A stretch of DNA of 64,000 bases. It comes from Lytechinus pictus (Eukaryota). A model generated the notes under the pieces. That model made no database searches and was not told where the DNA came from. It worked only from the letters and a program-made list of their open reading frames with translations. The stretch spans positions 1,984,001 through 2,048,000 of the forward strand of contig NC_087250.1 in assembly GCF_037042905.1 (NCBI RefSeq), written 5' to 3'. The position numbers and the translations under genes were made by a program. Below, piece after piece: positions 337-64,000 of this stretch. Each line of letters opens with the position of its first letter. The stretch's first letter is position 1.

Positions 337-599
337 TATATCACAAGGTGGTTTTATGAACCAGTTTGGAAGATTGCTTCAACTGTTCTCATTACAGCTT
401 AAACTAGTTTCCGTTAAACTAGTTTCCATTAAACTAGTTTCCAGAAGGTAGTGAGAATGGTGTCACACTTAACTCTTTGTGAAACAACTCTCTGATGAAA
501 CTTACCATTTTGTTTAGCATTATCAAATGAAGGACCAGTAAACTGACCCGATTCATTTTGTTTTTTATGATCGAATGAAGGACCAGTGAACTGACCAGA

Positions 600-1033
600 T
601 CCAGTCGTAAGATATTTAGCAGATCGTTAAAATTAATGCTACTGGAAGAATATAATTAATTTGGGATGGTAAAATACTGCCTGAAAACAAATAATTCTAT
701 ATAAAGATTTTGTGAATAATTAAGATATTTTTTTCTTGTAAATAGTGTAAATATGTTCACTTAAAATTATCGAAATTTTCTGCAACATTAATAACTAGAA
801 TTAGTATTGAATTTGATGTACAATATTGAGATTTAGTTACATGTAGATTTATTGTTTAAACTACATGTATGATAATGATATTATTTGGGGCTAACCTCGA
901 TTAGCATCTTGCTATTATGTTAGCTCCAATTACCAAATGTTTTGTTTATACATGTATGTGATGTACTATTCCTTGTAATTGTACCTAACAGTGATATTTG
1001 GTAATAAATTCAATTCAATTCAATTCAATTCAA
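600..1033 (+). mobile_element. Probable 5'-truncated non-LTR retroelement 3' end inserted in the 49-bp array
   Basis: AT-rich segment with hairpin GGGGCTAAC...GTTAGCTCC (~887-928), then AATAAA and an (ATTCA)n tail; interrupts array copies. Confidence 0.5.
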
Positions 1034-4000
1034 TTTTGTTTTGTATGATAAAATGAAGGACCAATGAAAGTTACCCGCTTCATTTTGTTTTGTATGATCG
1101 TATGAAGGACCAATGAAACTTATACCCACTTCATTTTGTTTTGTATGATCGTATGAAGGACCAATGAAACTTACCTGCTTCATTTTGTTTTGTATGATCT
1201 TAAGAAGGACCAATGAAAGTTACCCGCTTCATTTTGTTTTGTATGATCGTACGAAGGACCAATGAAACTTACCCGCTTCATTTTGTTTTGTATGATCGTA
1301 CGAAGGACCAGTGAAACTTACCCGCTTCATTTTGTTTTGTATGATCGTACGAAGGACCAATGAAACTTACCCGCTTCATTTTGTTTTGTATGATCGTATG
1401 AAGGACCAATGAAAGTTACCCGCTTCATTTTGTTTTGTATGATCGTATGAAGGACCAATGAAACTTACCCGCTTCATTTTGTTTTGTATGATCTTAAGAA
1501 GGACCAATGAAAGTTACCAGCTTCATTTTGTTTTGTATGATCGTACGAAGGACCAATGAAACTTACCCGCTTCATTTTGTTTTGTATGATCTTAAGAAGG
1601 ACCAATGAAAGTTACCCGCTTCATTTTGTTTTGTATGATCGTACGAAGGACCAGTGAAACTTACCCGCTTCATTTTGTTTTGTATGATCGTACGAAGGAC
1701 CAATGAACTTAGCCGCTTCATTTTGTTTTGTATGATCTTAAGAAGGACCAATGAAACTTACCCGCTTCATTTTGTTTTGTATGATTAAGAAGGACCAATG
1801 AAACTTACCCGCTTCATTTTGTTTTGTATGATCGTACGAAGGACCAGTGAAACTTACCTGCTTCATTTTGTTTTGTATGATCGTACGAAGGACCAATGAA
1901 ACTTACCTGCTTCATTTTGTTTTGTATGATCTTAAGAAGGACCAATGAAACTTACCCGCTTCATTTTGTTTTGTATGATCTTAAGAAGGACCAATGAAAC
2001 TTACCCGCTTCATTTTGTTTTGTATGATCGTATGAAGGACCAATGAAACTTACCCGCTTCATTTTGTTTTGTATGATCGTACGAAGGACCAATGAACTTA
2101 GCCGCTTCATTTTGTTTTGTATGATCGTATGAAGGACCAATGAAACTTACCCGCTTCATTTTGTTTTGTATGATCTTAAGAAGGACCAGTGAAACTTACC
2201 CGCTTCATTTTGTTTTGTATGATCGTACGAAGGACCAATGAAACTTACCTGCTTCATTTTGTTTTGTATGATCTTAAGAAGGACCAATGAAAGTTACCAG
2301 CTTCATTTTGTTTTGTATGATCGTACGAAGGACCAATGAAAGTTACCCGCTTCATTTTGTTTTGTATGATCGTACGAAGGACCAGTGAAACTTACCCGCT
2401 TCATTTTGTTTTGTATGATCGTACGAAGGACCAGTGAAACTTACCCGCTTCATTTTGTTTTGTATGATCTTAAGAAGGACCAATGAAACTTACCCGCTTC
2501 ATTTTGTTTTGTATGATCGTACGAAGGACCAGTGAAACTTACCCGCTTCATTTTGTTTTGTATGATCGTACGAAGGACCAGTGAAACTTACCCGCTTCAT
2601 TTTGTTTTGTATGATCGTACGAAGGACCAGTGAAACTTACCCGCTTCATTTTGTTTTGTATGATCGTACGAAGGACCAGTGAAACTTACCCGCTTCATTT
2701 TGTTTTGTATGATCGTACGAAGGACCAGTGAAACTTACCCGCTTCATTTTGTTTTGTATGATCGTATGAAGGACCAATGAAACTTACCCGCTTCATTTTG
2801 TTTTGTATGATCGTACGAAGGACCAGTGAAACTTACCCGCTTCATTTTGTTTTGTATGATCGTACGAAGGACCAGTGAAACTTACCCGCTTCATTTTGTT
2901 TTGTATGATCGTATGAAGGACCAATGAAACTTACCCGCTTCATTTTGTTTTGTATGATCGTACGAAGGACCAATGAAACTTACCTGCTTCATTTTGTTTT
3001 GTATGATCGTACGAAGGACCAGTGAAACTTACCCGCTTCATTTTGTTTTGTATGATCGTATGAAGGACCAATGAAACTTACCCGCTTCATTTTGTTTTGT
3101 ATGATCGTACGAAGGACCAATGAAACTTACCTGCTTCATTTTGTTTTGTATGATCGTACGAAGGACCAGTGAAACTTACCCGCTTCATTTTGTTTTGTAT
3201 GATCGTACGAAGGACCAGTGAAACTTACCCGCTTCATTTTGTTTTGTATGATCGTATGAAGGACCAATGAAACTTACCCGCTTCATTTTGTTTTGTATGA
3301 TCGTACGAAGGACCAATGAAACTTACCCGCTTCATTTTGTTTTGTATGATCGTACGAAGGACCAGTGAAACTTACCCGCTTCATTTTGTTTTGTATGATC
3401 TTAAGAAGGACCAATGAAACTTACCTGCTTCATTTTGTTTTGTATGATCGTACGAAGGACCAATGAAACTTACCCGCTTCATTTTGTTTTGTATGATCGT
3501 ACGAAGGACCAGTGAAACTTACCCGCTTCATTTTGTTTTGTATGATCGTACGAAGGACCAGTGAAACTTACCCGCTTCATTTTGTTTTGTATGATCGTAC
3601 GAAGGACCAGTGAAACTTACCCGCTTCATTTTGTTTTGTATGATCGTACGAAGGACCAGTGAAACTTACCCGCTTCATTTTGTTTTGTATGATCGTATGA
3701 AGGACCAATGAAACTTACCCGCTTCATTTTGTTTTGTATGATCGTACGAAGGACCAATGAAACTTACCCGCTTCATTTTGTTTTGTATGATCGTACGAAG
3801 GACCAGTGAAACTTACCCGCTTCATTTTGTTTTGTATGATCGTATGAAGGACCAATGAAACTTACCCGCTTCATTTTGTTTTGTATGATCGTACGAAGGA
3901 CCAGTGAAACTTACCCGCTTCATTTTGTTTTGTATGATCGTATGAAGGACCAATGAAACTTACCCGCTTCATTTTGTTTTGTATGATCGTACGAAGGACC

Positions 4001-5370
4001 AGTGAAACTTACCCGCTTCATTTTGTTTTGTATGATCGTACGAAGGACCAGTGAAACTTACCCGCTTCATTTTGTTTTGTATGATCGTATGAAGGACCAA
4101 TGAAAGTTACCCGCTTCATTTTGTTTTGTATGATCTTAAGAAGGACCAATGAACTTAGCCGCTTCATTTTGTTTTGTATGATCGTACGAAGGACCAATGA
4201 AACTTACCCGCTTCATTTTGTTTTGTATGATCGTACGAAGGACCAGTGAAACTTACCTGCTTCATTTTGTTTTGTATGATCTTAAGAAGGACCAGTGAAA
4301 CTTACCCGCTTCATTTTGTTTTGTATGATCGTACGAAGGACCAGTGAAACTTACCCGCTTCATTTTGTTTTGTATGATCGTATGAAGGACCAATGAAACT
4401 TACCCGCTTCATTTTGTTTTGTATGATCGTACGAAGGACCAGTGAAACTTACCCGCTTCATTTTGTTTTGTATGATCGTATGAAGGACCAATGAAACTTA
4501 CCCGCTTCATTTTGTTTTGTATGATCGTACGAAGGACCAGTGAAACTTACCCGCTTCATTTTGTTTTGTATGATCGTACGAAGGACCAGTGAAACTTACC
4601 CGCTTCATTTTGTTTTGTATGATCGTACGAAGGACCAGTGAAACTTACCCGCTTCATTTTGTTTTGTATGATCGTACGAAGGACCAGTGAAACTTACCCG
4701 CTTCATTTTGTTTTGTATGATCTTAAGAAGGACCAGTGAAACTTACCCGCTTCATTTTGTTTTGTATGATCGTACGAAGGACCAATGAAACTTACCCGCT
4801 TCATTTTGTTTTGTATGATCGTACGAAGGACCAATGAACTTAGCCGCTTCATTTTGTTTTGTATGATCGTACGAAGGACCAGTGAAACTTACCTGCTTCA
4901 TTTTGTTTTGTATGATCGTACGAAGGACCAATGAAACTTACCCGCTTCATTTTGTTTTGTATGATCGTACGAAGGACCAGTGAAAGTTACCCGCTTCATT
5001 TTGTTTTGTATGATCGTACGAAGGACCAGTGAAAGTTACCCGCTTCATTTTGTTTTGTATGATCGTACGAAGGACCAGTGAAAGTTACCCGCTTCATTTT
5101 GTTTTGTATGATCGTACGAAGGACCAATGAAAGTTACCCGCTTCATTTTGTTTTGTATGATCGTACGAAGGACCAATGAAACTTACCTGCTTCATTTTGT
5201 TTTGTATGATCTTATGAAGGACCAATGAAACTTACCTGCTTCATTTTGTTTTGTATGATCGTATGAAGGACCAATGAAAGTTACCCGCTTCATTTTGTTT
5301 TGTATGATCGTACGAAGGACCAATGAAACTTACCTGCTTCATTTTGTTTTGTATGATCGTATGAAGGACC
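1033..5370 (-). repeat. 49-bp minisatellite, ~88 copies; unit = last 37 nt of exon 5334-5471 + first 12 nt of intron (contains the 5' splice site)
   Basis: Minus-strand unit GGTCCTTCGTACGATCATACAAAACAAAATGAAGCGG|GTAAGTTTCA(T/C)T; further degenerate copies at ~495-600. Confidence 0.97.
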
Positions 5371-5471
5371 GGTGGAAGGTGTCGCTGCTTCCCCCCTCCA
5401 TCTCACCCAATCAAAATCATCTCCATTAGAGTTCACCCATCCACACCAGCTGCTTTCGAAATCACAGTCAA
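5334..5471 (-). CDS. MAM O exon 1 (last exon in window)
   Basis: [45 protein letters not shown]; 138 nt, phase 1-1; donor GCAG|gtaagt. Confidence 0.9.
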
Positions 5472-8400: not shown

Positions 8401-11400
8401 AACGATGATGGCAATCACCTTTAAAAGAAGTGCTGTACCTGCCTTTCATTAGTTTAGACATTAACCCTTTGAACCCTGAATTATTAGGGGCGGTGGTGAC
8501 CTATACCCTGAATTATTTGCACAAATCGACCACTTGCACAAACTCCCATGATTCGAGATCCAACGGCATCTTCCCCCTGCTAGTACCCGGACCGAGCCGG
8601 CTGACGTTGTTTACCTTCTCGTAGACCTAGTCTACAAACAGAAATATCAACTTTAGTGTCTGTTTTGGGATCAAAATCACTGTTTTAACCAAAGTCAGAT
8701 ATACCAATTGCTTCCCCATAATAAACACGTGACTCACCGCGTATTACACCGTGTGTTACCGGACATACGACATGAGGAACCACAAAAAAAGGCATATTTG
8801 GGCCATTTTTTATGCTAAATCCTTCCAAAATCATTGCGAACCTTGACTGAAATTATCGACTAAATATTCCTACACGTACTAGAAAGATGACGTCATTTTG
8901 AAAAGATCACCTGACATTTAGCATCCATGTTTTGAAGTAACATGGCTGTAGGCCGGTATTCCGGCCTATCGGGTATTTGCGCGTTTACTGGTTGGCCAGT
9001 ATTCCGCCCTATCGGGTTCAAAGGGTTAAGAGTCGCTGCTATTTGTTAAAATCACATTAATTTAATAATTTTGGAAATTACATCTACACATTGTACACAA
9101 ATGAAACATTAAATAAAGTGAACACTGAAATACTCCAGTTTCAAAGATTTCAATAAATTGATAAAATACTGGCAATATCCAGAGAAGAAACAGGGCCCAA
9201 AATCTTAGCAAATTGATCATGGGGTTTATTTTTTAAGATCTTTCAAATATTTAATCACTCATAGAAATCAGCCCCATTACCAATAGCTAAACAGATGTGT
9301 TGGCTCAGTTGGTAGATCGTCCATCTTACAACTGGGAGGTTGGGAGTTCAAGCCCCGGTCGCATCAGACCAAAAGACGTTAAAGAAGGGAGTTGCTGTAA
9401 CCCTGTTTACGTTCAACGATTTGAGGGATAGAGATTTTATTTCAAGCGATAAAATATGGGTTTCCATACCAAGAAGAAAATTGAGTCTATTCCATTGTGT
9501 TGAAACATACAAAATACTTACTGCAACGGTAAAAGCTCCGGCATCTCGACCAAACATATGGTAGTAATACCTCCAACAGACCGTTTGGGTGGTTTCCATG
9601 GAAACATGAGGGCTTATAAGCTTTGCAGACTCGCCCAAACTATGTCTTCCAGATAACTCAGTGTACATGTAATGACCTGCAAAATATAAACCAAAGGAAA
9701 TATATAGAAAGAGACGGAACAATCAAAACTGTCATATACTGTACTGTATATCCTGAAGGAGTTGGTTCTCCAGAATAATTTGATACCATTTTCATATGGC
9801 ATATTTTTACGCTTAAATAATTGGGAGGTATTCTATGTTATGATGTGAAATTTTGATTTCCATCAAAGTAGGGCATGAATGCAATGAAAGAGTCCAAGTG
9901 TCCCTGAAGTCATAATTTGCTGTAAACATCATTGCAAAATACATTTTCAATCAAATAAATGGATTCAATACTAAAATGTGTTTATTAAACAATTATCAAC
10001 TTAACTTTTCAAAATATATTTTGCAATGGATTTTAGCACATTTAGTAAAACTAAGTGGTGGCAGAAACTAATCTGCTCTTAATCTCAACTTAAGAGAGCC
10101 TGACCTTACCAAAGCTTGTTCCGTATGTGACGTCAACAGAGGGTCCTGTGTATGAAGTGGGCGTGTCTCCAGACCAGAATGTCCAATCAAATTCATCGGT
10201 GATAGAGTCTTGAACGTAACCACAGATCTGTGGATCCTCAAACTCACAACTCAATGTTCCTATCAAATAAAAAACATGAAATAAAATCAACAATTTTTCC
10301 ACAATACAGATTTTGAAGAAAACAGAGTCTTCAGGCAAAATAAAAATTAATTACGAAAAATCCAACAAAGCAAGATTTTAATGTTTTATAATGCATATAT
10401 GTAAATTGTACTATTGCAAATATGATTCTCATAATCAAAACAAGTACAATTTGCATTTTTACATATGGGACAACTGAGGGAAATAAGAGAATTGAATTGA
10501 GTTGGATTGATATGAAAATCCAATAAACGGTGCACCAGATAATAATCTGCCAATCTGACCAAAATGAAACCAGTTCACAGAGTTGTTCTCATGTTTATCT
10601 ATTTTCTGCAGTGCTTGCATGTCTTTCTAACATAATATTCAACATGACTGTATCAAATGCTTTATACCTGTCAGAACTGAGCATAGCATTCTGAAATACT
10701 GTATGCCTCTAACTTTTTGTCAAGGTGCCCAAGATACCTACCAATTCAACATACATGCAGAATATATGTACAGTTAACAACAGAATTATTCATACCCCTA
10801 CTGAAATTTCAATGTTTCATGTTTTTCTGGAAAATGACAAGTGGATACAGAATATTTTGGCAGTAGTTGGATACCTTTACTTGAAAAGAAAAAATTCTGT
10901 ATGGGTTTTGTATAACCTCATTTGCATAACAAATATCGCACTGCTTTATTTGTATTTTGACTAGCTCAAAATTATTCATACCCTTTGTCAATAAAACTGT
11001 AAAGGCATTGTTAAATACTGTTTCACGTAAAATTAATCTGAACTGCATGGTCCTAAATGGTATCAGTGTCTGTGGTAAGGTGCAAAAATTGAGCTCTGAA
11101 AAAAATGTGCTTTAAAAACAACATTAAGTGCTTCAAAAGAGTAAAAATAGACAAGTGGCCAGAATGGCCCCGAACCACGATACTAATTTTCCCCATAGAC
11201 TACTCTGTTTATAGAAAAATGCACTGACTGCACCCTCGTCTTGAGGGTTTTCCACAGGATTTCAATGGGATTCGGGTCTGGGCTTTGGCTTGGCCATTGT
11301 AGCACCTCCACACTGATATCCTTAAATCATTATTTGACTGCCTTTGCAGTATGTTGAGGATCGTTGTTCTGTTGGAATGTCCAGTTGGGGTCGAGATGAA

Positions 11401-44400: not shown

Positions 44401-44775
44401 ACTATCTGATAACATGGTAGTCCACAAATTTTTACGGCCCTCCTCCCTTCCCTAAGTAACTCTTTTTTCTTAACCGTACTTACACTGTACCTACATTTGA
44501 TAGTGTTGTTTGACCACTCTGTGGTGGTTTAGTTGAACTACAAGATTGCTTTTTTGTCATCTCAGGTTGAATTGTACAATTTCTAGAATTTATCCCATTT
44601 TCTCTCTATTTGTACTCCACCTGTTTCTCCCCCTTTTCTTTCCTGTATCTGATAGTCTTGTGTGATCATTTAGAGGACCAGCTTGTGGTGTAGTACAGTA
44701 CTACCAGATTGTCTTTGTCAGTCAAGTTGATCTCTACCGTCAGCAGCATTAGCATTTTCCTTCTATCACCCCTCC

Positions 44776-44809
<34 letters not shown>

Positions 44810-53800: not shown

Positions 53801-56800
53801 GTAAACTTTTTTTCCTTACGCCTTACGTGGGAGGCATACATGTATCATACAAACTTGTTTAAAAATATAGGACACAATTGTGATTTAATGTCATGGAGAT
53901 CAATTCTTTATCTTTTGTGATAAGTTTTTTTTCTCTCTCTCCATACGTACCCATTCCTCTCCCTTCAGCGTGAACTTTACACCTAATCCCATCTCCTTAT
54001 TACGAACAGTGTAAGAACTAGAAAACATTTGAAACATTCTTCCTTGAGTTTTAACGGGGTGCACAGGGTGGAATCAGGAAAGAAGAAAGAAAGGCATATC
54101 AACAACAAAAAATAGTTAAAATAGACAAAAGACATTAATAAGCAGACTTGATTTTTTTTTTGTAAATCAAAATTGACAAGTTATTAACAGAGTGAATGTT
54201 AACAAACATTAATGACAAACTTAAAATAAAACAGAATTATGAATATCAAGGGCATTTGCGAATTATCATTATGTTAAAACAAACGTGCGGTCAATATTGG
54301 GATCGTCAATTCGTTGACATGGTTGATAAAACCCTAATAAAGGGAATGAAAGGTACGTGAAAACGAATACTAGTATAACCAAGATCTTACAAAGTAGACG
54401 TGCAAAAAGCGAACACCAGCAAAACTGGTTGTGCTCATCGATTTGTTATTTGGTTCTTTTGTTATTGTCAACAGTCTGGTAGAGTCTTGCTCCCCGCCCA
54501 CACCTTTGATCTCCTTTGATCACATCCGCTTCCCAATTTATGACAGGATGTTCATAGAAATGGGGGGGGGGGTTAATTTGTTGATGCGTTAACAACAATA
54601 AATGAGGATGTTCTGTTCATTTCGGTTCAAATCGGGTCTCTAAAACCCTCACCCTATAAAAAGTATAAATTTACCTAAATGTAACAGATGGAACAGATTT
54701 ATCTTTTTGCTAAAACATCTGATTACATTACCTGCACTCTATTGCGGTTTTTAAGTTACATTGGTAGATATTCGAATTGGGAAGAGATGAAAGTGGTGGA
54801 AATAATAAATGAGAAGAAGGAAGAAATATACTTTGTTATATGAATTGGAAATGATAAAACCAAGTCACAACTTGGTATAATACAGAATTCAGTGTTATAT
54901 GGCAGCTAAAAATAATAATACATGACATTTGTAAAGCGCACTTTCCATCTTGATTGGATGCTCAATGCGCTTCAGAGCTGCAAAGCAACAAAAGCTATTT
55001 ACATAATGTAACTATTTCAAAAAATTCTAGCGCATTTAGCTTCAATGTTTAAACACATACCCTAGTAAAAGTATGTTTTCGAAAGCTACTATGACGTAGT
55101 GTGTGGAATGGGTACTTAACAAGTTAATTATCACTTTCCGACAAAGCAAGAATGGAGCAGCTATACAGACCATTCTATTCTTTTGTTAAGAGTTTTGGTG
55201 GGTGCTCACGCAAACGCTAACTATCAAACCTAACAATTCTTTTGGGGGAACAAAGGAGTCAGTCAAGCCAAGTTAAAGAATGAAAGCCCCGTCCCGGTTC
55301 ACCTTTATATAGTCGAAAATCCTTTTAATCATCACGCGTGAGCATTACTGAGTAAAACAAGTTTCATAACTAAGTACTGCAGAACTATATGGTATACATA
55401 TTACCATGAAACAATAAGCCCCCTCTATTTTCTCTTTCTCCCCTTTCCCCTTCGTTTCTTCGCTCCCTTCTGCTTCTCTCACTTTTTCTATTTCCTTCTC
55501 ATTTTCCCTCCATCCCTTCCTATTTGCCTTTTCTTTCATTTGTCTTTCTTCTTTCTTGAAGGAGCGGATGTAAATTCGGGACAAGTTTTTAATTGATGCA
55601 ACGAGAGCAGGAAATTGTGAGCATGGTGAGAGAAAATAATTACAAGATTGAGCGCAAGAATGTTCAATACTTGTCATCAGCGTAAAAATGGGCAGATGCG
55701 AGTTACTAACGTATTTTCTGACATGAAAATCTGGACAAATTCCCAAATTTTTCTTCCCACTTTCTCTCTTTTTCTCTACTTTTTCTTAAGTCCCACTTCT
55801 ATTGTCCCCTGTACTTCTTACCTTTTCCTGCGCCCTTTCTTCTCTTCCCCTTTTCGCTTTTTTACTCCATTTTATTATGTCTCCCTTCTTCATTTTATTT
55901 AATTTCCCCCTCCTTATCATTCTCTCTTTCTCATTCTGTCCTTCCTTTTCTTCCTTTGTCTCTTCTTCTTCCCTTCGATTTTCAATCTATTTTCCTTTTC
56001 TCCTTTTCCCTCTTTTCTTTCTGCCTCACCTTCCCTTTTTTATCCCCTCTGTTTTCTTCTCCATTTCACCTTTTCCTTATTTCTTTTCTTTACCCCCTCT
56101 CCCTCTTTCTCCTCTTCGCCCCCCCCCCCTATTTTCTCTTTCTGCACTTTCCCCTTCTCTCACTTTTTCTTTTTCCTTCTCGTCTTCAATCCATCCCTTC
56201 ATTTTCGCCTTTTCTTTCATTTTTGCTTTCTTCTTCTCCCTTTTATCTGCATCTCGTAGATCCGCGCCTGAAAGGCATGTCAGGGTAAATAAAAAAGGAT
56301 GACCATGTAGGGAAAGAATAGAGTAGATGGTTCTAGGACGACCTCTGGAATGTAGGGTCAACATCGACAAATACCTGCTCCTTTGTCAGAAACTCATTTA
56401 CGATCACGACTAACCATGTCAGTGAATGAAATAACGGACACCACGGGAGAATATTCATATACATGTATAGGAAAGGAACCCAAAACTTTGTAATTTTCAT
56501 AACAGATTTTATCCACGATAAATTATCGAAAACTTATGCTTGATATGAGATAAAAATCACATGCAGTCTTGAACGAATGTGTCAAATCAGACCTCCTCTT
56601 TCGACCAAGAATGCCCGGCCGAACATACTAGGGAAACACCCTAGGATAGACGCGGGCACTATCCTCGGGCGCTCCCCTAGGGCACTCATGTCCTAGGGGA
56701 GCGGACGCGGGCGTCTTCCCTCGTCCGCTCCCCTCAAATGTCCGCTACGGGCTACCGCGTTCGCCCTAGGGGGCACTGTGACGTTTCCCGCGGCCGGCAC

Positions 56801-59800
56801 TGTACAAAGTGAAAAACAGATTTACTTACGTTCACCATACATGTGATACCAGAATTGAAAACAGCCACCCTGGGTAGGAGGTTGTGGTTCACTGACAAAC
56901 CATGCTCTACGACCCTCAGCCTCGAAGCCTACAGGGAACAGCATGTACCATCCTATATACACACAAAGAATGAAACAGACAAAGAACAATATAAATCATA
57001 TCAATTAAGACATATGACAAACAATTTTTGTTGAGGGCGTTGCATGGTTCAAAGTCTTATTCGCCATAAGGCCAAGGTTTTAATACCACAGCAGCACTTG
57101 CAAATCATGTTGCCAACACAAAATTTGGATATCAGTAAAAATTTATGTTATTTATGCGTTTTCTTAGCTAATTAATCTCGTTAAATCTACCAATTTTATT
57201 TTAATAATTTAGTCATGCTAATTTATGCATGTATTTAGAATTGGGTGTTAACCTGTAGCCCCTGAAGTAAATGCTTCTATCTAGAGACCCTTTTATGGAA
57301 TTTCTATCAAATATACATTAAACATAATTGTTGGAATTAAAATTTGCCACATTGCCTAATTCACCTTTAATAAAGACGAAAATACAATTACAACAACGTG
57401 ATTGAATCAATATACCTTGGTATCTTCCGGTGGTATGGTCCACATCTGGTCCTGTGTTACTGGTATCAGTACCTCCTTGGTTTCTATACCAATTCAAATC
57501 ATCACCACCGTACACATTATCCCATAGACACGTATCATCTTCAAAGTCACAGAAACCTTCAGGGAAAAAAGAAAAGAAAAAAAATATACACATAAACTAA
57601 ACATACCATCCCCTCAGTGGTTTCCTAATTCTAAATAAAACTTTATTTATTCAAAAATAAAATACTGGTTTCATTTATTTGTTTTGTTTCGTTTATATAT
57701 CATGAATTTTTTCTCTCTGCATGTTTGTTCACAATACATGTATATGATTGCAGTCAATATCTAAAGGGGAGTTCTTGCGATGGGATAAAAAAAATCCTTC
57801 AAAATTTTATACACATTTAGATGTATCAACTCTACTTCACTACTGTTTCTTTAAATATCATACATAGTATATGCCTGAAAACTTTTGAGATTCTGGACTA
57901 TAAGATTCATATTGGGCATAATATGCCTATGTTCAAACTCAACTATCTTTCAATGTGAATGTGAACAGTATTGGTTTCCCTAAAATAACATCATTAATTC
58001 CTTACATTGGCAATGCTAGGAACATCACCGTTAACAAATGCATACTGGCCCATGTTAAGTGTTTAACTCCAAAAATGCTCCCTAACCAATGTTTATTTGT
58101 ATCTGATACATGAGTCATAAACTGTAAAATGAAAAATGCCGCCAAGAAACTAAAACTGGAGCAAATAAAACAACAAATGCTAAGTTAAGACTGTGTTTTT
58201 CAGAATGTTAAAAAAGTGTTAAAAATATTTGCTGGGAAGCATTTCATGACAATAAATATTCAATAATCTTCACTCACTGATTATTATAGGCAACTGAAAG
58301 CCTAGCATCTGATTGGATAAGGGCGCAATAGTCAGTGAAAACCATTGACTAAATGCTCCCACTTTGACCTACCTTGTGCCACGCATGGCCCTATTTCTAG
58401 ATTGATATCATCAATTGCAATTTCTCCATCTTCACCATCTAAAGTGGGTCCAATCACAGCCTCAAAAGCAACCTGAAAATCAGAAGAAAATCAGAAATTT
58501 ATGATTTTATTAACAAATAAAATATACTGTTGGCAATCTCACCTTCAATTACAAAGGTCAATCAAGCAGCTGTCACTTTGGTACATTGATCAAACAATTG
58601 ATGATTTTATCACTTATTATTGATCAATGCAACAATCATTATTAACTAATGTAATTCTTCTGGCAGTTTCATCTGCATTACAAAATTCCATGAACACAAG
58701 ATTGTTCACTTAGTAACATTGATCAAGTATTATTAATTTTTTTCTTTCTCATTTACTCTTTGAATATGTAATTTGATCATCCAAGACCAACCAGGGTGAA
58801 ACAAAATCGGAATTCATTACAATGTCAAGATTGCTCATCTCTTATACTGAAAGGAGCAGACTTTCATGTCACTCTCTCACCACTTGAGTTCAAACTGATG
58901 AAAGTCATATTATTATTATTATCATACCAGGACCATCTAGCTGCTGAAGAGCATTATTTTTCAAGGGACAAGATTACTCAACTTTTACCAAGAGAGTAGA
59001 ACAAGCCTTCAGTGTCATTGGATGATTTCAAGTTTTGTGTTGGCGTTGGTACAATGTTAGTGTTGGTTTTAGGAGTAAAAGTTGGATTGTGTTTTCAATT
59101 AACACCCCTTGTGAGTAAATAAAAATGATCAAACTCCCATCACTGATAGTTCTATGCATTTTGAGATATGTTTCATGACCAGTGACATATTAAGTTTGGT
59201 GCTATGCTGCATAAAAAGTGTCTTGAAACCAAAAGGTCAACATAAAACAACACACCCTCTACTAATGCACTCCACATCATCGGCCTGGGATCATCCTGGA
59301 ACTGCTGAAGAGGATTATTTGTCAAGGTACAAGATTACTTGATTCTTACCTTGAATGTTGAAGTAGCCTTCAGTGTGACCCTATCCATCATCCAATCATT
59401 GAAGAGTCCACCAGGTTGTGTCTCCCAGTACGGTCCTATCAAGGTATTACCATCATGTTCCTAAACCTTCAGAGTTCTCAATCCTTTATGGTGATACCAG
59501 AAAGTCTTACCTTGAAAGAAGAAGTAGCCTTCAGTGTGACCCTATCAATCATCCAATCATTGAAGAGTCCACCAGGTTGTGTCTCCCAGTACGGTCCTAT
59601 CAAGGTATTACCAACACGCTCCCAGACCCTCAGAGTACTCAATCCTTTATGGTGATACCAGAAAGTCTTACCTTGAAAGAAGAAGTAGCCTTCAGTGTGA
59701 CCCTATCCATCATCCAATCATTGAAGAGTCCACCAGGTTGTGTCTCCCAGTACGGTCCTATCAAGGTATTACCAACACGCTCCCAGACCCTGAGAGTACT

Positions 59801-62800
59801 CAATCCTTTATGGTGATACCAGAAAGTCTTACCTTGAATGTTGAAGTAGCCTTCAGTGTGACCCTATCCATCATCCAATCATTGAAGAGTCCACCAGGTT
59901 GTGTCTCCCAGTATGGTCCTATCAAGGTATTACCAACACGCTCCCAGACCCTGAGAGTGCTCAATTCTTTATGGTGATACCAGAAAGTCTTACCTTGAAA
60001 GAAGAAGTAGCCTTCAGTGTGACCCTATCCATCATCCAATCATTGAAGAGTCCACCAGGTTGTGTCTCCCAGTACGGTCCTATCAAGGTATTACCAACAC
60101 GTTCCCACACCCTGAGAGTGCTCAATCCTTTATGATGATACCAGAAAGTCATACAGTCACCCTCAGACGTTGCGGGGATATCTTTGGAGTACAGGATTGC
60201 TCGATCTTCTTCACTAACCATCTCAGAGTGGTTTGCATAGATGAAGTAACCTTTGAATGGTAGAAATGCAATGTTTTGATGATCATTGCTAGGTAGGTTG
60301 GCAACGTACTCAAAAAGCAATTGATTATCAGTGCATATTTTTATTATAAATGCTTTTGAGGCATATTCATTAAATTAGCACATCAATGATATGGTTCTCA
60401 TCCAGCAACCAGCGAGCAAACCTAAGAAAAGTTTACTTTCAACCAAGTATGGTTTATTCACTGATCCTAGCAGGCAATAGGGTGAACTAGATTCAGTTTA
60501 AAAATATAAAAATTGGAATTTAGAAGGTAATACATTTAACATACTGGTTCATGACTTTTAACTAAGCCATGACATACCACAAATACATTTATAATGGTCG
60601 AATATGTTCAAGATCACAACTAAAATTCTAATATTACACACTATACATTGATATGACAAAGAGAGTACAGATAATGGGAGGAAAAAGGGAGGACAAAATG
60701 GAGGACAAAATGTAAAATTGCAAAACATAAACATTTTTTTTCCATTGCATCAATTGTAACCACTGTAGATTAGTATTTTGTGTTAATCGTCTTTTTGTGA
60801 GTTTGTTTTATCTTCTGTTCGTGTTGTAGTGGTGTTTTTTATGTCATACTTTTGGTTATGTTAATACATTAAAATGTCATATTTTTGGGGTTGCGCTATA
60901 CCCCGGTTATGCCGCCAGGACGACAGTGAACCGACAGGTATTACCGTACCTCTTTTTCTTTTTCGGTTTAATGGATCGTCCTGTCGGCAGGACTAGGGTA
61001 CAAGTTATTTGTAAATTATTCTGAGTACACAGTTTTTTTTAGGATATGTTGTATGTACTTATACACAGTTTGTATCAATGTTCTGTTTGATTGAAGTGCA
61101 ACCATATGTTTTGTATACTTTGATTGTTTTTGTGACGAATAAAAACTGCAAAGATAAAAAAAAAAATGGAGGACAAGATAAGAGACTTCTGAGACGGTGG
61201 CTCACCATTAGGTGTTCCAAGGCTGTGATCAGGAAGATTCATTCCCGGTCGAGGATAGTCAAACCCTGTACCTCTTGACCAATCAAAATCATCTAGGACA
61301 GTCTCCTGCATCCAACCGCACATATCATAACGGAAGTCACATTTCCCTTCAGATTGAACAAAAGAAAAAGTATTTAACTATCACAAATACATAATGAAAA
61401 CTTATTTAATCTCTCATTTACAGTTTAATATTGTGTTTATTCAGGAGAATTCAAATTCTATCCTTGTTTTATTTTCCTTGAAGCGCCATGAGCACCGAAA
61501 GGTGGACCTCTGCACTATATAAGTAGCCACCATTATTATTATTATTTATAATTACTAGTCATTTAGAACAGTTTCATGTATAAAACCACACATGTTATTT
61601 TGAAAGTTAAATTCCCAATGAGATTGAACGATGGGGATTCTGACATTGCAATGCATAATGAATTTGATACAACTTTATTATGTGTGGGCGCGTCTTGGTT
61701 TAGTGGTTCTGACTCTCCCCTTTAAAACAGAGGGTCATGGGTTTAAATCCTAGCCGTGGCGTGTTTTCCTTCAGCAACAAATTTATCCACATTGTGCTGC
61801 ACTCGACCCAGCAGAGGTGAATGGGTACCCGGCAGGATTATTTCCTTGAATGCACTGAGCGCCGGTGATGGCAGCTCGAGCTAAAGCCGGGGTAATAATA
61901 GCAGTGCTTTGTATCCTAAGGCAAAAAGCGCTTTTTAAATCCAGCTAGTATTATTATTACTATTGAGATGAAAAAAATTAGGAAAAGAATAACCACACAT
62001 TAATAATCACACATTAATAACCAAACATAACAGAGAAAGATAAGTCCGGGATATAAATTATTATTTTCAATGCAGGACAGTAGTATAATATAATTTTTTT
62101 TACCCATATTTTATATAAATGTGATAAGGCTTACTTGTTGCTGGGCAGGGTCCAAGGTAGGCTGTGATATCATCGATTGCCATGTCACTGAAAATATTAT
62201 CACCAATCGTCCCTTCTATTTGGAACTAAGACAAAACAAGAGAAAAACATACATAAACTCTGAGATTTTAACATTATTCTCAGATCAGTCAAGATATTGC
62301 CACATATTGCTCCTTCTGTTTAAATCAATACTCGACAAATCACCAAGCAAACAGTGAGAAATTGTGAAACACCACATCATTTACAACTGAAAATATGCTT
62401 CAAAAGTTACTCAAAAATATGAAAGAATTTGAACAATTTTCATTCTAGTTTATTGTTATTCTATCACAAAAATAGGATAATCATATCAAAACAGGAGCAT
62501 AAAATTTGTAAAAGTTCAAATTATTTGCTCCTTATTCATAATGGTGTGGATGCCTACAGATTAACAGGGAGGGGGGTTATGCTGTTTCATATTTGCAAGA
62601 GAAAACAAGAAATAAATGTAGCATTCAAGGGGTTTCAAGAACAAAAATTAAAAGAGCCAAGAGGGAAATGTCCTACCCTGTAAATAATATTAGCATAAAA
62701 AAATATTGAAAATAAGCTAAAAGTAATGTCATGTAAATTATAGTACCTCAAAAAGATCCTTAGGTGGGTAAAAGTCAATGTTTGCAATCTGCCAGAAATC

Positions 62801-63844
62801 TCCTGTATTCCCTTCTCTCATCCACAATGTCCCTCCATCTGAATTGTCATTCTCACCCCTCCATTTGATTTTGAGTGAGCCCATATTCTCCCCATTCAGG
62901 TTATACCACATCTGGAGGCATATGACGGGTTCGGTCCTTCCATCTTGCACGGGGGAGATCAACCTTGCACTTTCATAGTAATGATTCCCAGACTGGGTAT
63001 ACAAGTAGTATCCTGTATATTCAATAAGGTCAAAGGTCAACTTGGTTAATAAGTCTGAGAATGAATCACTTACAAGATGTTCCATGAAACTTTGTTTTCC
63101 TAACGAGGGGGCCTGAAACACAAAGCTTAGCAATGATCGTAAAACATTGTTCTACAATTAATTGCATGTACCACAATGAATTATCAATCGTGAAAATCAA
63201 GCGTATGATTAATACCTCACCTTTGTGCTACGAGACCCTGGTGGGTGTTTCCTAAAGCTTTTCATAAAGTTATGCATGCACCCTCTCTGCACCAGATATC
63301 ATATTTTCATAGGTGCTATGTCAGCTATATATGTAGCAATATATCTCTTCGTACAAGAAGGGTCTCCAAACATGCTTAACTTAATACAGAGGTGTGAGTG
63401 GTCACAAATATAACGATCTGGAAAAAGCCAAAGAGTATTGAGAAAGTTTAAAATAGAAAGAGCTCCCATACTTTTTTTTACAGAGGAGAGCCAAAAATAA
63501 GCTGAAATTAAACTGAAAATAAAAATTAAAAAAATTTTAAATCAGCTAAAACTCTTGAACTGTCACACCCCAGTTGATAACAACTTCATGAAACAGCCAA
63601 TTTGTATGTCAAATGAATGAGAAAGAAGAGAGAGAGAGAGAGAATGAAAACATGGAAATAACTTATTTACCCGTTCCACTGGTATGATCTTGACTAGGAC
63701 CTGTTCCCCAACCACTGTCACCTGATCGACCACGCCTCCAATCAAAGTCATCTGATTGGTCATCAGTCCATGAACATATGTCATCCTCAAAGTCACATGA
63801 CAGGGGTTTGAATGTGTAGTCAGGTGATGCCTCAGGTGGATAGA
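5334..63844 (-). CDS. Multi-exon gene (partial; 46 exons in window) encoding a very long tandem MAM-domain protein, MALRD1/apical endosomal glycoprotein-like; 14 complete MAM domains (A-N) plus start of a 15th (O)
   Basis: Repeated MAM motifs CDFE..C.W...DD.DW...G.T..TGP..DHT / G.Y.Y...ARL.SP...C..FWYHM.G..G.L / W...G..W...FEG..G...DIAIDD...G.C. All exons bounded by AG and GT (one GC) with matching phases; summed length 7185 nt, open throughout. Confidence 0.93.
6299..6412 (-). CDS. MAM N exon 4
   Basis: [38 protein letters not shown]; 114 nt, phase 1-1. Confidence 0.88.
7017..7258. mobile_element. Small inverted-repeat element (MITE-like)
   Basis: CATTGGGTGATTTCAAGTTCAGTGTTG ... CAACACCGGACTTGAAATCACCCAGTG; related left end at ~59015. 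Confidence 0.6.
7683..7755 (-). CDS. MAM N exon 3
   Basis: [24 protein letters not shown]; 73 nt, phase 0-1; tctctgtag| and G|gtaaga; not in the ORF track. Confidence 0.85.
7801..8240. mobile_element. Truncated TTAA-target non-autonomous element (Kolobok-like)
   Basis: Starts TTAA|AGGGGAATCCAACCC and resembles the other TTAA|AGG elements; no right TIR seen. Confidence 0.5.
8465..9025. mobile_element. piggyBac-type MITE
   Basis: TTAA|CCCTTTGAACCC ... GGGTTCAAAGGG|TTAA; non-coding. Confidence 0.85.
9292..9435 (+). mobile_element. tRNA-derived SINE (truncated)
   Basis: A-box TGGCTCAGTTGG and B-box GAGTTCAAGCC; body matches the minus-strand copy at 35225-35405. Confidence 0.75.
9522..9676 (-). 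CDS. MAM N exon 2
   Basis: [24 protein letters not shown]...[19 protein letters not shown]; 155 nt, phase 1-0. Confidence 0.9.
10110..10259 (-). CDS. MAM N exon 1
   Basis: [49 protein letters not shown]; 150 nt, phase 1-1. Confidence 0.9.
10771..12519 (-). mobile_element. Tc1-family (IR/DR type) DNA transposon, defective
   Basis: TA|CAGTTAACAACAGAATTATTCATACCCC ... GGGGTATGAATAATTCTGTTGTTAACTG|TA; ~220-bp TIRs with an inner repeat of AATTATTCATACCC. Confidence 0.95.
11228..12103 (-). pseudogene. Tc1 DD34E transposase pseudogene
   Basis: MAKTKE start; [38 protein letters not shown] (second catalytic D changed to N), [12 protein letters not shown]; frameshifts and stops. Confidence 0.9.
12588..12669 (-). 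CDS. MAM M exon 3
   Basis: [27 protein letters not shown]; 82 nt, phase 0-1. Confidence 0.9.
12722..13205. mobile_element. Non-autonomous element, possibly Helentron/HINE-like
   Basis: Subterminal IR GTCTCGCCTGCA ... TGCAGGCAAGAC followed by an A-run; two internal ~180-bp direct repeats (GACC...TTGGTTAAGATTTC). Confidence 0.45.
13572..13846 (-). CDS. MAM M exon 2
   Basis: [12 protein letters not shown]...RLISP...[18 protein letters not shown]...ESFR; 275 nt, phase 1-0. Confidence 0.9.
14554..14697 (-). CDS. MAM M exon 1
   Basis: [47 protein letters not shown]; 144 nt, phase 1-1. Confidence 0.9.
15165..15386 (-). CDS. MAM L exon 3
   Basis: [12 protein letters not shown]...[11 protein letters not shown]...[17 protein letters not shown]; 222 nt, phase 1-1. 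Confidence 0.9.
17253..17833. mobile_element. TTAA-target MITE (Kolobok-like) with long internal palindrome
   Basis: TTAA|AGGAGAATGAAAC ... GTTTCATTCTCCT|TTAA; internal arms inverted; ends 20 nt from the donor of exon 17854-17973. Confidence 0.85.
17854..17973 (-). CDS. MAM L exon 2
   Basis: [40 protein letters not shown]; 120 nt, phase 1-1. Confidence 0.9.
18401..18541 (-). CDS. MAM L exon 1
   Basis: [47 protein letters not shown]; 141 nt, phase 1-1. Confidence 0.9.
18586..19160. mobile_element. TTAA-target MITE (Kolobok-like)
   Basis: TTAA|AGGACAAGTCCACCCCA ... TGGGGTGGACTTGACCT|TTAA; same family at 35990-36574 and a fragment at ~50410-50570. Confidence 0.85.
19675..20135. mobile_element. 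MITE with G/C-run termini
   Basis: GGGGGGGCACTCA ... TGAGTGCCCCCCC inverted ends; GC-richer non-coding interior. Confidence 0.6.
20390..20480 (-). CDS. MAM K exon 3
   Basis: [30 protein letters not shown]; 91 nt, phase 0-1. Confidence 0.88.
20766..21031 (-). CDS. MAM K exon 2
   Basis: GYLIYANQG...[12 protein letters not shown]...[12 protein letters not shown]...KSQFQ; 266 nt, phase 1-0. Confidence 0.9.
22319..22453 (-). CDS. MAM K exon 1
   Basis: [44 protein letters not shown]; 135 nt, phase 1-1. Confidence 0.88.
22842..22932 (-). CDS. MAM J exon 3
   Basis: [30 protein letters not shown]; 91 nt, phase 0-1. Confidence 0.9.
23404..23601. repeat. Intronic 49-bp tandem repeat, 4 copies
   Basis: GAGATTATAATATCAGTGATAGCTGATGAATTTGAAGAAATACTGAAGA x4; unrelated to the exon-derived 49-mer. 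Confidence 0.9.
23815..24416. mobile_element. Degenerate piggyBac-type MITE related to 38775-39520
   Basis: Shares CTTGCGCA...TTTTGAGACCAAATT...ATTACGCA core with 38775-39520; ends ...AGG|TTAA. Confidence 0.6.
24585..24862 (-). CDS. MAM J exon 2
   Basis: [22 protein letters not shown]...[16 protein letters not shown]...GFYR; 278 nt, phase 1-0. Confidence 0.9.
25490..26185. repeat. ~210-bp intronic direct duplication separated by a tRNA-derived SINE (~25730-25937, minus strand)
   Basis: CAGTAAGTCATTGATCATCAGGTAGACTGTCATTAGT... at ~25518 and ~25988. Confidence 0.8.
26213..26451. mobile_element. TA-target Tc1/mariner-type MITE
   Basis: TA|CACAGCAAAAACTGTGGTGTTAA ... TTAACACCACAGTTTTTACAGTG|TA. 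Confidence 0.85.
26482..26655 (-). CDS. MAM J exon 1 (linker + N-terminal part)
   Basis: [38 protein letters not shown]...[11 protein letters not shown]; 174 nt, phase 1-1. Confidence 0.88.
27505..27770 (+). mobile_element. tRNA-derived SINE
   Basis: AAACAGAGGGTCGTGG..TC(G/A)AATCC.AGCCATGGCG...GCAAGAAATTTATCC...TGCTGCACT...AATGGGTACC...GCCGGGGTAATAAT core shared with other copies. Confidence 0.8.
28195..28490 (-). mobile_element. tRNA-derived SINE (same family), near full length
   Basis: Reverse complement of the 34444-34736 copy; B-box GGTTCGAATCC; (TTA)n tail. Confidence 0.85.
28579..28663 (-). CDS. MAM I exon 3
   Basis: [28 protein letters not shown]; 85 nt, phase 0-1. Confidence 0.87.
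28960..29225 (-). mobile_element. L2/CR1-group LINE 3' fragment
   Basis: Minus strand reads [34 protein letters not shown], a typical ORF2 C-terminus. Confidence 0.8.
29702..29973 (-). CDS. MAM I exon 2
   Basis: [11 protein letters not shown]...[16 protein letters not shown]...VWMLEGQQ...VDD; 272 nt, phase 1-0. Confidence 0.9.
30480..31745. repeat. Intronic ~54-bp (ATC/ACC-rich) minisatellite, ~22 copies
   Basis: Unit ATCACTGCTACCAACACCATCACTATCATCATCATCATTTTTACCACCACCATC; begins 16 nt from the donor at 31762. Confidence 0.93.
31762..31890 (-). CDS. MAM I exon 1
   Basis: [43 protein letters not shown]; 129 nt, phase 1-1. Confidence 0.9.
32405..32600 (-). CDS. MAM H exon 3 (ends at a GC donor)
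   Basis: [65 protein letters not shown]; 196 nt, phase 0-1; donor CTAG|gcaagt. Confidence 0.87.
32870..33440. repeat. Degenerate CA-rich tandem repeat next to the donor at 33477
   Basis: Recurrent CACTATGACAGT.CAATAACACACACTCAC / CACTAAAATA units. Confidence 0.8.
33477..33640 (-). CDS. MAM H exon 2
   Basis: [21 protein letters not shown]...[22 protein letters not shown]; 164 nt, phase 1-0. Confidence 0.9.
34444..34736 (+). mobile_element. tRNA-derived SINE, near full length
   Basis: A-box GTGGCCCAGTAG, B-box GGTTCGAATCC, conserved core, (TAT)n tail. Confidence 0.85.
34923..35069 (-). CDS. MAM H exon 1
   Basis: [48 protein letters not shown]; 147 nt, phase 1-1. Confidence 0.9.
35225..35405 (-). 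mobile_element. tRNA-derived SINE (family of 9292-9435)
   Basis: Minus strand TGGCTCAGTTGGTAGAGC...GGGTTCAAACC...CAGATCAAAAGACGTTAAA. Confidence 0.8.
35990..36574. mobile_element. Kolobok-like MITE (family of 18586-19160)
   Basis: AGGTCAAGTCTACCCCA ... TGGGGTGGAGTTTTCC-TTAA; interior homologous to 18586-19160. Confidence 0.8.
36588..36672 (-). CDS. MAM G exon 3
   Basis: [28 protein letters not shown]; 85 nt, phase 0-1. Confidence 0.9.
37245..37492 (-). CDS. MAM G exon 2
   Basis: [23 protein letters not shown]...[19 protein letters not shown]...ANYK; 248 nt, phase 1-0. Confidence 0.9.
38775..39520. mobile_element. piggyBac-type MITE
   Basis: TTAA|CCCTAAAAAGACTGGG ... CCCAGTCTATTTAGGG|TTAA; subterminal palindromes GGGGCTGATTCAGCCCC. 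Confidence 0.88.
39655..39839 (-). repeat. 92-bp tandem duplication spanning the donor of exon 39807-39950
   Basis: [10 protein letters not shown] codons + ~60 nt of intron repeated; donor mutated GT to AT in the intronic copy; third copy at 38266-38360. Confidence 0.9.
39807..39950 (-). CDS. MAM G exon 1
   Basis: [47 protein letters not shown]; 144 nt, phase 1-1. Confidence 0.9.
40784..40846 (-). CDS. Pro/Thr-rich inter-domain linker exon
   Basis: [20 protein letters not shown]; 63 nt, phase 1-1; ttttag| and |gtaagt; shares YPPEA with the linker in exon 63671-63844. Confidence 0.85.
41665..41749 (-). CDS. MAM F exon 4
   Basis: [28 protein letters not shown]; 85 nt, phase 0-1. Confidence 0.87.
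42815..42929 (-). CDS. MAM F exon 3
   Basis: [38 protein letters not shown]; 115 nt, phase 2-0. Confidence 0.87.
43988..44141 (-). CDS. MAM F exon 2
   Basis: [22 protein letters not shown]...[19 protein letters not shown]; 154 nt, phase 1-2. Confidence 0.9.
44642..45141 (-). repeat. ~187-207-bp tandem triplication spanning the donor of exon 45037-45180
   Basis: Last ~105 nt of the exon + intron start (including a CT microsatellite) repeated; copies carry TGG to TGA and an insertion. Confidence 0.92.
45037..45180 (-). CDS. MAM F exon 1
   Basis: [47 protein letters not shown]; 144 nt, phase 1-1. Confidence 0.9.
46199..46385 (-). CDS. MAM E exon 3
   Basis: [62 protein letters not shown]; 187 nt, phase 0-1. 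Confidence 0.88.
47359..47510 (-). CDS. MAM E exon 2
   Basis: [22 protein letters not shown]...[19 protein letters not shown]; 152 nt, phase 1-0. Confidence 0.9.
48007..48156 (-). CDS. MAM E exon 1
   Basis: [49 protein letters not shown]; 150 nt, phase 1-1. Confidence 0.9.
48663..48747 (-). CDS. MAM D exon 3
   Basis: [28 protein letters not shown]; 85 nt, phase 0-1. Confidence 0.9.
49448..49700 (+). mobile_element. Degenerate tRNA-derived SINE
   Basis: GTGGTTTAGTGGTTAGAGCATTGGACTC...GTTCAGATCCC tRNA-like head. Confidence 0.55.
49844..50109 (-). CDS. MAM D exon 2
   Basis: [22 protein letters not shown]...[10 protein letters not shown]...VPYQ; 266 nt, phase 1-0. Confidence 0.9.
50877..51026 (-). 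CDS. MAM D exon 1
   Basis: [27 protein letters not shown]...IDHTLGDGT; 150 nt, phase 1-1. Confidence 0.9.
51097..51545 (+). mobile_element. RTE-clade LINE 3' fragment
   Basis: Degenerate RWYGHVLRR...[10 protein letters not shown] motif; short (GTAATGAT)n-like tail. Confidence 0.75.
52190..52411 (-). CDS. MAM C exon 3
   Basis: [30 protein letters not shown]...[27 protein letters not shown]; 222 nt, phase 1-1. Confidence 0.9.
52722..52809 (-). repeat. Partial duplicate of the 3' end and donor of exon 56830-56952
   Basis: [25 protein letters not shown]|gtaagtaaatct versus exon [25 protein letters not shown]|gtaagtaaatct. Confidence 0.92.
52867..56802. mobile_element. 3.9-kb non-autonomous TIR transposon (TA target, Tc1/mariner-like ends)
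   Basis: TA|CAGTGCCGGCCGCAGGAAACGTCAC ... GTGACGTTTCCCGCGGCCGGCACTG|TA (25 bp, 1 mismatch); subterminal CCCTAGG and GCGCCCGC motifs; no transposase ORF. Confidence 0.88.
56830..56952 (-). CDS. MAM C exon 2
   Basis: [41 protein letters not shown]; 123 nt, phase 1-1; not in the ORF track. Confidence 0.9.
57416..57556 (-). CDS. MAM C exon 1
   Basis: [47 protein letters not shown]; 141 nt, phase 1-1. Confidence 0.9.
58373..58472 (-). CDS. MAM B exon 3
   Basis: [33 protein letters not shown]; 100 nt, phase 0-1. Confidence 0.9.
59345..60150 (-). repeat. 161-bp tandem repeat x5 spanning the donor of exon 59994-60250
   Basis: AAG|GTAAG junctions at 59994, 59833, 59672, 59511 and 59350; older degenerate junction copy at ~58925-59020. 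Confidence 0.96.
59994..60250 (-). CDS. MAM B exon 2
   Basis: GYFIYANHS...[31 protein letters not shown]...KATSSFK; 257 nt, phase 1-0; donor AAG|gtaag. Confidence 0.9.
61206..61346 (-). CDS. MAM B exon 1
   Basis: [27 protein letters not shown]...PDHSLGTPN; 141 nt, phase 1-1. Confidence 0.88.
61685..61963 (+). mobile_element. tRNA-derived SINE (family of 34444-34736)
   Basis: Same core and (TAT)n tail. Confidence 0.83.
62135..62225 (-). CDS. MAM A exon 3
   Basis: [30 protein letters not shown]; 91 nt, phase 0-1. Confidence 0.9.
62747..63012 (-). CDS. MAM A exon 2
   Basis: [21 protein letters not shown]...[16 protein letters not shown]...DLFE; 266 nt, phase 1-0. Confidence 0.9.
63671..63844 (-). 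CDS. MAM A exon 1 (linker + N-terminal part)
   Basis: [57 protein letters not shown]; catag| acceptor, |gtaaa donor; 174 nt, phase 1-1. Confidence 0.9.
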
Positions 63845-64000
63845 CTATGAATAATCAATGGACAAAGTCACATGACAGGGGTTTGAATGTGTAGTCAGGT
63901 GATGCCTCAGGTGGATAGACTATGAATAATCAATGGACAAAGTCACATGACAGGGGTTTGAATGTGTAGTCAGGTGATGCCTCAGGTGGATAGACTATGA
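63788..64000 (-). repeat. 75-bp tandem repeat (>=3 copies, runs off window) spanning the acceptor of exon 63671-63844
   Basis: CATAG|TCTATCCACCTGAG... junctions at 63844, 63919 and 63994; copies identical. Confidence 0.95.

Follow-up and report, generated by a model that had tools for sequence, protein, structure and literature searches.

Tandem duplications straddling splice junctions of a multi-MAM-domain gene in Lytechinus pictus

A multi-MAM-domain gene and its exon map

We analyzed a 64,000-nucleotide window of the Lytechinus pictus genome (G000:C6:1984001-2048000, from an 812-Mb assembly). The minus strand of the window carries a giant multi-MAM-domain gene of ~15 MAM units with ~3 exons each. 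The MAM motifs follow one another in a regular order within stop-free segments: CDFE...DFDW...TGPxxDHT, then GxYxY...FWYHMxG, then GDIAIDD. When a 106-residue exon is used as a query, thousands of multi-MAM proteins are matched. An ortholog fragment of the MALRD1-like type, P0033 (XP_011672769.1, named at its source 'MAM and LDL-receptor class A domain-containing protein 1-like'), aligns exon by exon from 24743 down to 10093, with 60–89% identity overall and at least 70% identity in most exons.

The gene model was built from the MAM motifs, the exon map provided by P0033, tblastn searches with 150 MAM proteins, and joints in RNA. These sources give 43–46 exons in the window, corresponding to 86–92 junctions, which agrees with the figure of about 92 proposed in a first-pass annotation of this DNA. 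In window coordinates, MAM exons on the same strand extend from ~-65.5 kb to +114.4 kb, a locus of 180 kb, and the gene has one splice junction per ~620 bp. A remnant of a Tc1/mariner-type transposase is found on the minus strand inside an intron at 11186–11947.

Seven junctions are of particular concern here, and they were located in different ways. RNA joints give the exact position of the junctions at 59994 and 63844, and the ortholog map fixes the one at 18541. Those at 5334, 39807, 45037, and 56830 were placed by MAM homology, frame closure, and GT/AG signals. For the A-exon ending at 5334, the next exon is found in the left flank at a distance of ~7 kb downstream (window coordinate ~-1667), with a reading frame that agrees with the proximal donor (G|GT).

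Duplications at seven exon-intron junctions

Arrays were detected with TRF, and interrupted duplicates and displaced copies were added by self-blastn. The first-pass annotation had placed duplicated units over the donors at 5334, 39807, 45037, 56830, and 59994 and over the acceptors at 18541 and 63844. TRF, self-blastn, and inspection of the sequence recover a duplication at each of these seven sites, and the description of recurrent decoy splice-site arrays, with copies that keep intact sites, is right. Five of the duplications are tandem arrays without interruption (49, 92, 187, 161, and 75 bp), while in the other two the copies are parted by a transposon insertion (Table 1). The units include the authentic junctions, and the decoys are mostly intact. 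The seven units are unrelated to each other and sit at non-homologous exons.

Table 1. Duplications, neighboring elements, and control arrays at the MAM locus, with straddling arrays found elsewhere. Positions are window coordinates unless a handle beginning with L is given.
Position	Strand	Feature	Evidence	Remark
506–600	-	Two degenerate 48-bp copies of the 49-bp unit, ~85% identical	TRF, self-blastn	Same intron, 430 bp past the array
1033–5370	-	49-bp minisatellite, x88.6, 95% matches	TRF	
5334–5470	-	MAM A-exon		Its 3' end seeded the 49-bp array
12849–13138		Local duplication		Non-straddling control
18513–18556	-	Exon-proximal copy of ~150-bp duplication	Self-blastn, ortholog map	Authentic acceptor; MAM A-exon from 18541
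18585–19152	.	MITE-like insertion		Parts the two acceptor copies; relatives at 35989–36566
19232–19275	-	Upstream decoy copy of 18541 acceptor and exon start, 91% identical		Acceptor intact (19256)
23404–23600	.	Intronic 49-bp x4 array	TRF, self-blastn	Non-straddling control
25479–26155		Local duplication		Non-straddling control
30542–31742		Local duplication		Non-straddling control
32915–33429		Local duplication		Non-straddling control
38263–38370	-	Third 92-bp copy, displaced, 88% identical	Self-blastn	1.4 kb deeper in intron
39658–39839	-	92-bp x2 duplication over donor after 39807	TRF, self-blastn	Unit of 30 nt exon and 62 nt intron
42295–42381		Local duplication		Non-straddling control
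44642–45143	-	187–207-bp duplication, 2.4 copies, over donor CAG|GTTGGT after 45037	TRF, self-blastn	
52722–52809	-	Distal copy of ~158-bp unit, 93% identical		Donor intact (52730); ~270 bp upstream of next exon
52870–56805	.	DNA transposon, ~3.9 kb, terminal inverted repeats (cagtgccggccgcgggaaacgtcac...), TA duplication	Sequence, alignment	Parts the two ~158-bp copies
56818–56905	-	Exon-proximal copy of ~158-bp duplication	Self-blastn, sequence	
58941–59015	-	Degenerate partial copy (81% identical) of distal end of 161-bp array and intron beyond	Self-blastn	
59344–60154	-	161-bp x5.0 array over donor after 59994	TRF	
63788–64000 (in window)	-	75-bp array, 3.1 identical copies	TRF (x2.8, 100%)	Ends at 64016, just past the window
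L011 3287–3516		76 bp x3, A-exon donor		Straddler, left flank
L012 426–658		174 bp x2, B-exon acceptor		Straddler, left flank
L017 6721–7181		66 bp x7, B-exon acceptor		Straddler, left flank
L051 20075–20426		118 bp x3, MAM A-exon acceptor		Straddler, other animal assembly (GCA_964355755.1)

The largest array is the 49-bp minisatellite. In its unit, 38 nt from the 3' end of a MAM A-exon are followed by 11 nt of intron that include the donor GTAAGT, and the authentic donor lies directly after 5334. The donor reads GGTAAGT in 70 of 88 units, GTAACT in 13, and GGCTAAGT in four. In the 92-bp duplication the donor of the second copy has changed from GT to AT. The duplication at 45037 is called by TRF at 44792–45143 (x1.9), and self-blastn adds a third copy of 187/207 bp from 44642. 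Its unit contains ~105 nt of exon and ~90 nt of intron, and the donor is kept in copy 2 and lost in copy 3. The intron after 45037 starts with gttggtatgg, which when read through gives GWYG (window 45026–45040) and resembles the GWYxY start of the B-exons that follow. This may be the trace of an old junction shift or may be a coincidence.

In the ~158-bp unit, the terminal part of a MAM B-exon (coding ...FWYHMYGER) is followed by the GTAAGT donor that comes after 56830 and by ~24 nt of intron. The interior of the transposon that lies between its two copies is rich in CT-type low-complexity sequence and includes small tandem repeats. The 161-bp unit is composed almost entirely of exon, with 157 nt of a MAM B-exon followed by GTAA(GA), or 4–6 nt of intron, and AAG|GTAAGA is present in all four intronic copies. 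Variants within this array are distributed by copy, with TCAACATTCAAG common to copies 2 and 5 and TCTTCTTTCAAG common to copies 1, 3, and 4. This sharing suggests that the array grew through duplication of blocks of several units, not unit by unit. On the acceptor side, the 75-bp unit combines 57 nt from the start of an A-exon with the 18 nt of intron before it, which include the acceptor (...ttcatag). Its three acceptors are identical, and the authentic one is at 63844.

The anatomy of the units proposed in the first-pass annotation stands in part. Each unit does contain an exon edge and a splice site, but the addition of only a little intron is not general, as the intron share ranges from 4/161 to 62/92. 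The copies always extend into the intron, as had been noted, and this is the mere geometry of any tandem duplication that straddles a junction. The most distal copies were further said to be the most degenerate. The edges of the arrays are indeed diverged; however, in the 49-bp array the center is most uniform and both edges are more variable, and in the 161-bp array divergence is greater in copy 2 than in copies 3 and 4. Greater divergence at the edges than at the center is a generic feature of arrays.

Splicing at a non-proximal site soon leads to a stop codon, as the same annotation had traced. A TGA is met at about codon 17 past the junction of the 49-bp array, a stop at codon 13 for the 161-bp array, an in-frame TGA for the 75-bp array, and a stop after 13 codons from the decoy of 18541. 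Reading through the junction at 45037 meets a TAA at codon 5. A stop is therefore found within ~17 codons at each junction where read-through was traced.

Spliced contigs of the MAM gene are present in two transcript runs from different studies (X11 and X12). These contigs join 59994 to 58472, skipping the four 161-bp decoys, and contig pieces in two runs start the A-exon exactly at 63844, the exon-proximal acceptor. Three further introns are supported by contigs. In the transcript contigs of the two studies, where minor isoforms are hidden, no decoy takes part in a joint, and 59401–59800 is without depth. Two raw RNA runs (X14 and X15) place almost no reads on the exons of the gene. At two of the seven, the 161-bp array on the donor side and the 75-bp array on the acceptor side, splicing uses the authentic site next to the exon, with pseudo-site use that is minor at most.

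Dispersed repeats are found in introns at 61400–62000 and 63000–63600, with an RNA depth of thousands in the contig runs and 50–200 reads in the raw runs. They show many loose ends and variants, and further copies occur at 27516–27708 and 34477–34657. This looks like an abundant expressed repeat family that is separate from the expression of the host gene.

Placement of duplications relative to junctions

Seven duplicated junctions among about 92 had seemed high in the first-pass annotation, and a duplication process targeted to junctions had been proposed from this count. For the placement test, we listed every local direct duplication, defined as a TRF period of at least 25 or a blastn pair within 6 kb. 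In the null simulation each unit was placed uniformly on the collapsed gene, and only viable outcomes were retained, namely units that are intronic or that straddle one junction. The window (~52 kb when collapsed) has 13 families, and seven of these are straddlers, compared with 2.1 expected (P=0.0013). This window was chosen from several hundred windows of this genome because the count looked high.

The picture is different in samples that were not chosen in this way. In the flanks of the same locus (115 kb), where the exon annotation is less complete than in the window, there are 27 families with three straddlers versus 2.1 expected (P=0.36). The 11 arrays in 90 kb from 27 further MAM loci of this genome include no straddlers versus ~0.9 expected. 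In two other animal assemblies, MAM genes spanning 144 kb have 17 arrays, of which one is a straddler versus ~2 expected. Summed over these independent samples, which are small, four straddlers are seen versus ~5 expected. Pooling over the 180-kb locus gives 10 straddlers versus 4.2 expected, a ratio of ~2 (P=0.005). A modest real enrichment, up to ~2-fold, is possible but not established. The excess is thus confined to the window that was picked for it, and the flanks, the 27 MAM loci, and the two other assemblies give no support to the proposed junction-targeted process. The alternative offered in the same annotation, a filter that tolerates only straddling duplications, is contradicted by the purely intronic duplications, which make up 6 of 13 families in the window and 24 of 27 in the flanks.

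With 13 families in the 52 kb of the window and 27 in the 115 kb of the flanks, local duplications are about equally dense in both, at ~one family per 4 kb. Given one junction per ~620 bp, a unit of 50–200 bp straddles a junction with a probability of 0.06–0.26. The ten straddlers of the locus comprise six donors and four acceptors, and no single site type is favored. The junction has no set place in the unit, and the exon share ranges from 0.18 to 0.98. The intron parts of the units measure 4–6, 11, 18, ~24–33, 34, 62, 62, and ~90 nt, and there is no fixed relation between breakpoint and splice site. The 118-bp array in GCA_964355755.1 indicates that junction-straddling arrays are not special to this genome.

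Several arrays that at first seemed to overlap exons were rejected as straddlers. The array at -46976 adjoins an acceptor and is without exon sequence, and the array at -12147 begins 25 nt past a donor and is intronic. The array at 30542–31742 begins 15 nt past a donor, and its GAT/GGT-rich unit holds no copy of the exon end. Arrays in L037 and L023 and a 45-bp array in L050 were intronic on inspection. Low-complexity arrays rich in GAT/GGT are found 15–20 nt past the donors of MAM exons both at 30542–31742 and in the flank at 82200–82505 (window coordinates, L006). The flank array follows a possible GC-AG donor (AAG|GCAAGT).

Origin of the arrays and known parallels

We consider it likely that the arrays are ordinary minisatellites and short tandem duplications, placed essentially at random in a duplication-rich and exon-dense gene, and that the straddlers among them are tolerated. 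Duplications would arise, perhaps by replication slippage or unequal exchange, at essentially random positions where such events are frequent. If a duplication straddles a junction, the exon and its own splice site would stay intact, and the additional copies would lie in the intron. The spliceosome would keep to the exon-proximal site, probably through 5'-to-3' scanning and/or exon definition, and the copies would leave with the intron. Because they are removed in this way, a straddling duplication would be tolerated and could expand, and the decoys may be near-neutral. Under exon definition, the acceptor nearest the exon's own donor is chosen, and the choice of the proximal acceptor at 63844 appears to fit this rule.

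Two other origins for the copies were rejected. Long target-site duplications made by transposons do not account for them: the inserted elements have their own short TA/terminal-repeat ends inside the spacer, and five of the arrays are free of inserts. Recombination between paralogous MAM exons is contradicted by copies that are local and 88–100% identical and by units that are mutually unrelated.

Mutation directed to exon-intron boundaries, either by transcription- or splicing-coupled breakage and repair or by RNA-templated copying of unspliced pre-mRNA, would account for the excess in the window (7 versus 2.1, P=0.0013) and for that in the whole locus (10 versus 4.2). However, we regard it as quite improbable, as the unselected samples are without excess (3 versus 2.1, 0 versus 0.9, and 1 versus ~2). 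A uniform 3.3-fold enrichment predicts ~10 straddlers in the flanks and 27 loci, where three are seen. In addition, both donors and acceptors are hit, and the distance between breakpoint and junction varies from 4 to more than 90 nt. The units hold intron sequence beyond the splice site, which makes a cleaved splicing intermediate impossible as the template. Finally, ~one family per 4 kb combined with 1–2 junctions per kb leads to many chance cases per megabase of genes. A real but moderate (~2–3-fold) bias of the genome toward straddling duplications, visible in this gene and due to transcription- or splicing-linked mutation or to selection for decoys, is unlikely. A mild real excess could also come from persistence and detection, if purifying selection on the exon copy anchors an array and slows the decay of similarity, so that it is detectable for longer. 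The pooled ratio of ~2 for the locus (10 versus 4.2) is an effect of the size that such a bias can give, but the ratio in the independent samples is ~1, and the straddlers of the window are no older than the intronic duplications (88–100% versus 76–95% identity), which makes this explanation improbable as well.

It is also conceivable that the arrays are kept by selection, with decoy 5' or 3' splice sites that bind U1 or U2AF and either tune output through NMD or shield a long intron from premature cleavage. The consensus is retained in the 49-bp array (GGTAAGT in 70 of 88 units), the 161-bp array (four of four), and the 75-bp array (three identical acceptors), and use of a decoy soon meets a stop. 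However, youth and homogenization of the arrays (88–100% identity) explain the intact sites equally well, and variation in the 49-bp array is neither concentrated on the donor core nor kept out of it. Some decoys are dead, such as the second 92-bp copy and the third 187-bp copy, and the transcript contigs are without any decoy joint. Unrelated units at non-homologous exons are, moreover, what accidents would give. We therefore think a selected function for the decoys very unlikely. Mis-joined or over-expanded repeats in the assembly could be suspected from the complete identity of the three 75-bp copies, and all copy numbers are assembly figures. An artifact is nevertheless extremely improbable given internal variation that is structured (two or three types of unit in a non-random order, degeneration at the edges), the transposons between copies, and the degenerate outlying copies. 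Another assembly (L051) has an array of this kind, and the flanking exons and introns are backed by RNA.

Minisatellites that span exon-intron boundaries have already been described in single genes of humans (PMC1557585). One of them, the F7 intron 7 VNTR, is a 37-bp minisatellite of 5–9 units, each with 4 nt of exon, and its first unit lies over the donor of exon 7 (Borensztajn et al. 2006, PMC1557585). Its pseudo-sites are functional yet silent, and the upstream-most donor is picked by a 5'-to-3' search (PMC1557585). The same paper also cites boundary-spanning minisatellites of 10–26 units in IFI6 (6-16) intron 2, CBS intron 13, LMNB2, and PDGF intron 4, with use of the authentic donor only in LMNB2 and PDGF and additional use of the first two pseudo-sites in IFI6 and CBS (PMC1557585).

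The arrays in the MAM gene belong to the F7 IVS7 type. They are head-to-tail arrays in which the first unit holds the authentic exon-intron boundary and the splice site, a donor in F7, is reiterated in the intron. According to the contigs, the 161-bp array uses the upstream-most donor only, as in F7. Unlike F7, the units here hold 14–157 nt of exon, one array has ~88 units, and seven duplications are found in one gene. Arrays are also present here on the acceptor side, which the F7 model does not cover. Intronic units that reiterate a splice donor are likewise reported for IFI6, CBS, LMNB2, and PDGF (cited in PMC1557585). As described there, these are single human loci where some units add in-frame or tolerated sequence, whereas use of the decoys in the MAM gene leads to a premature stop.

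Boundary-spanning minisatellites are natural experiments in splice-site choice, as identical sites compete and position alone differs. The seven cases described here lie in one expressed gene, on both the donor and the acceptor side, and include a row of ~70 consensus donors. With such a panel, the scanning rule of the upstream-most donor and its acceptor counterpart could be tested outside mammals by ordinary RNA-seq. On present evidence the arrays do not reveal a new mutational mechanism, and their value is as a useful natural test set for splicing.

A different outcome of tandem duplication is invoked in the Rogers model, in which an exon segment containing AGGT is reportedly duplicated in tandem to create a new intron with its ends in the two copies. 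As in that model, the copies made by tandem duplication in the MAM gene bring additional splice signals, and their removal by splicing leaves the mRNA as it was. Unlike in that model, the introns here are old, with junction positions common to the paralogous MAM units and P0033, and the partner splice site lies outside the duplication.
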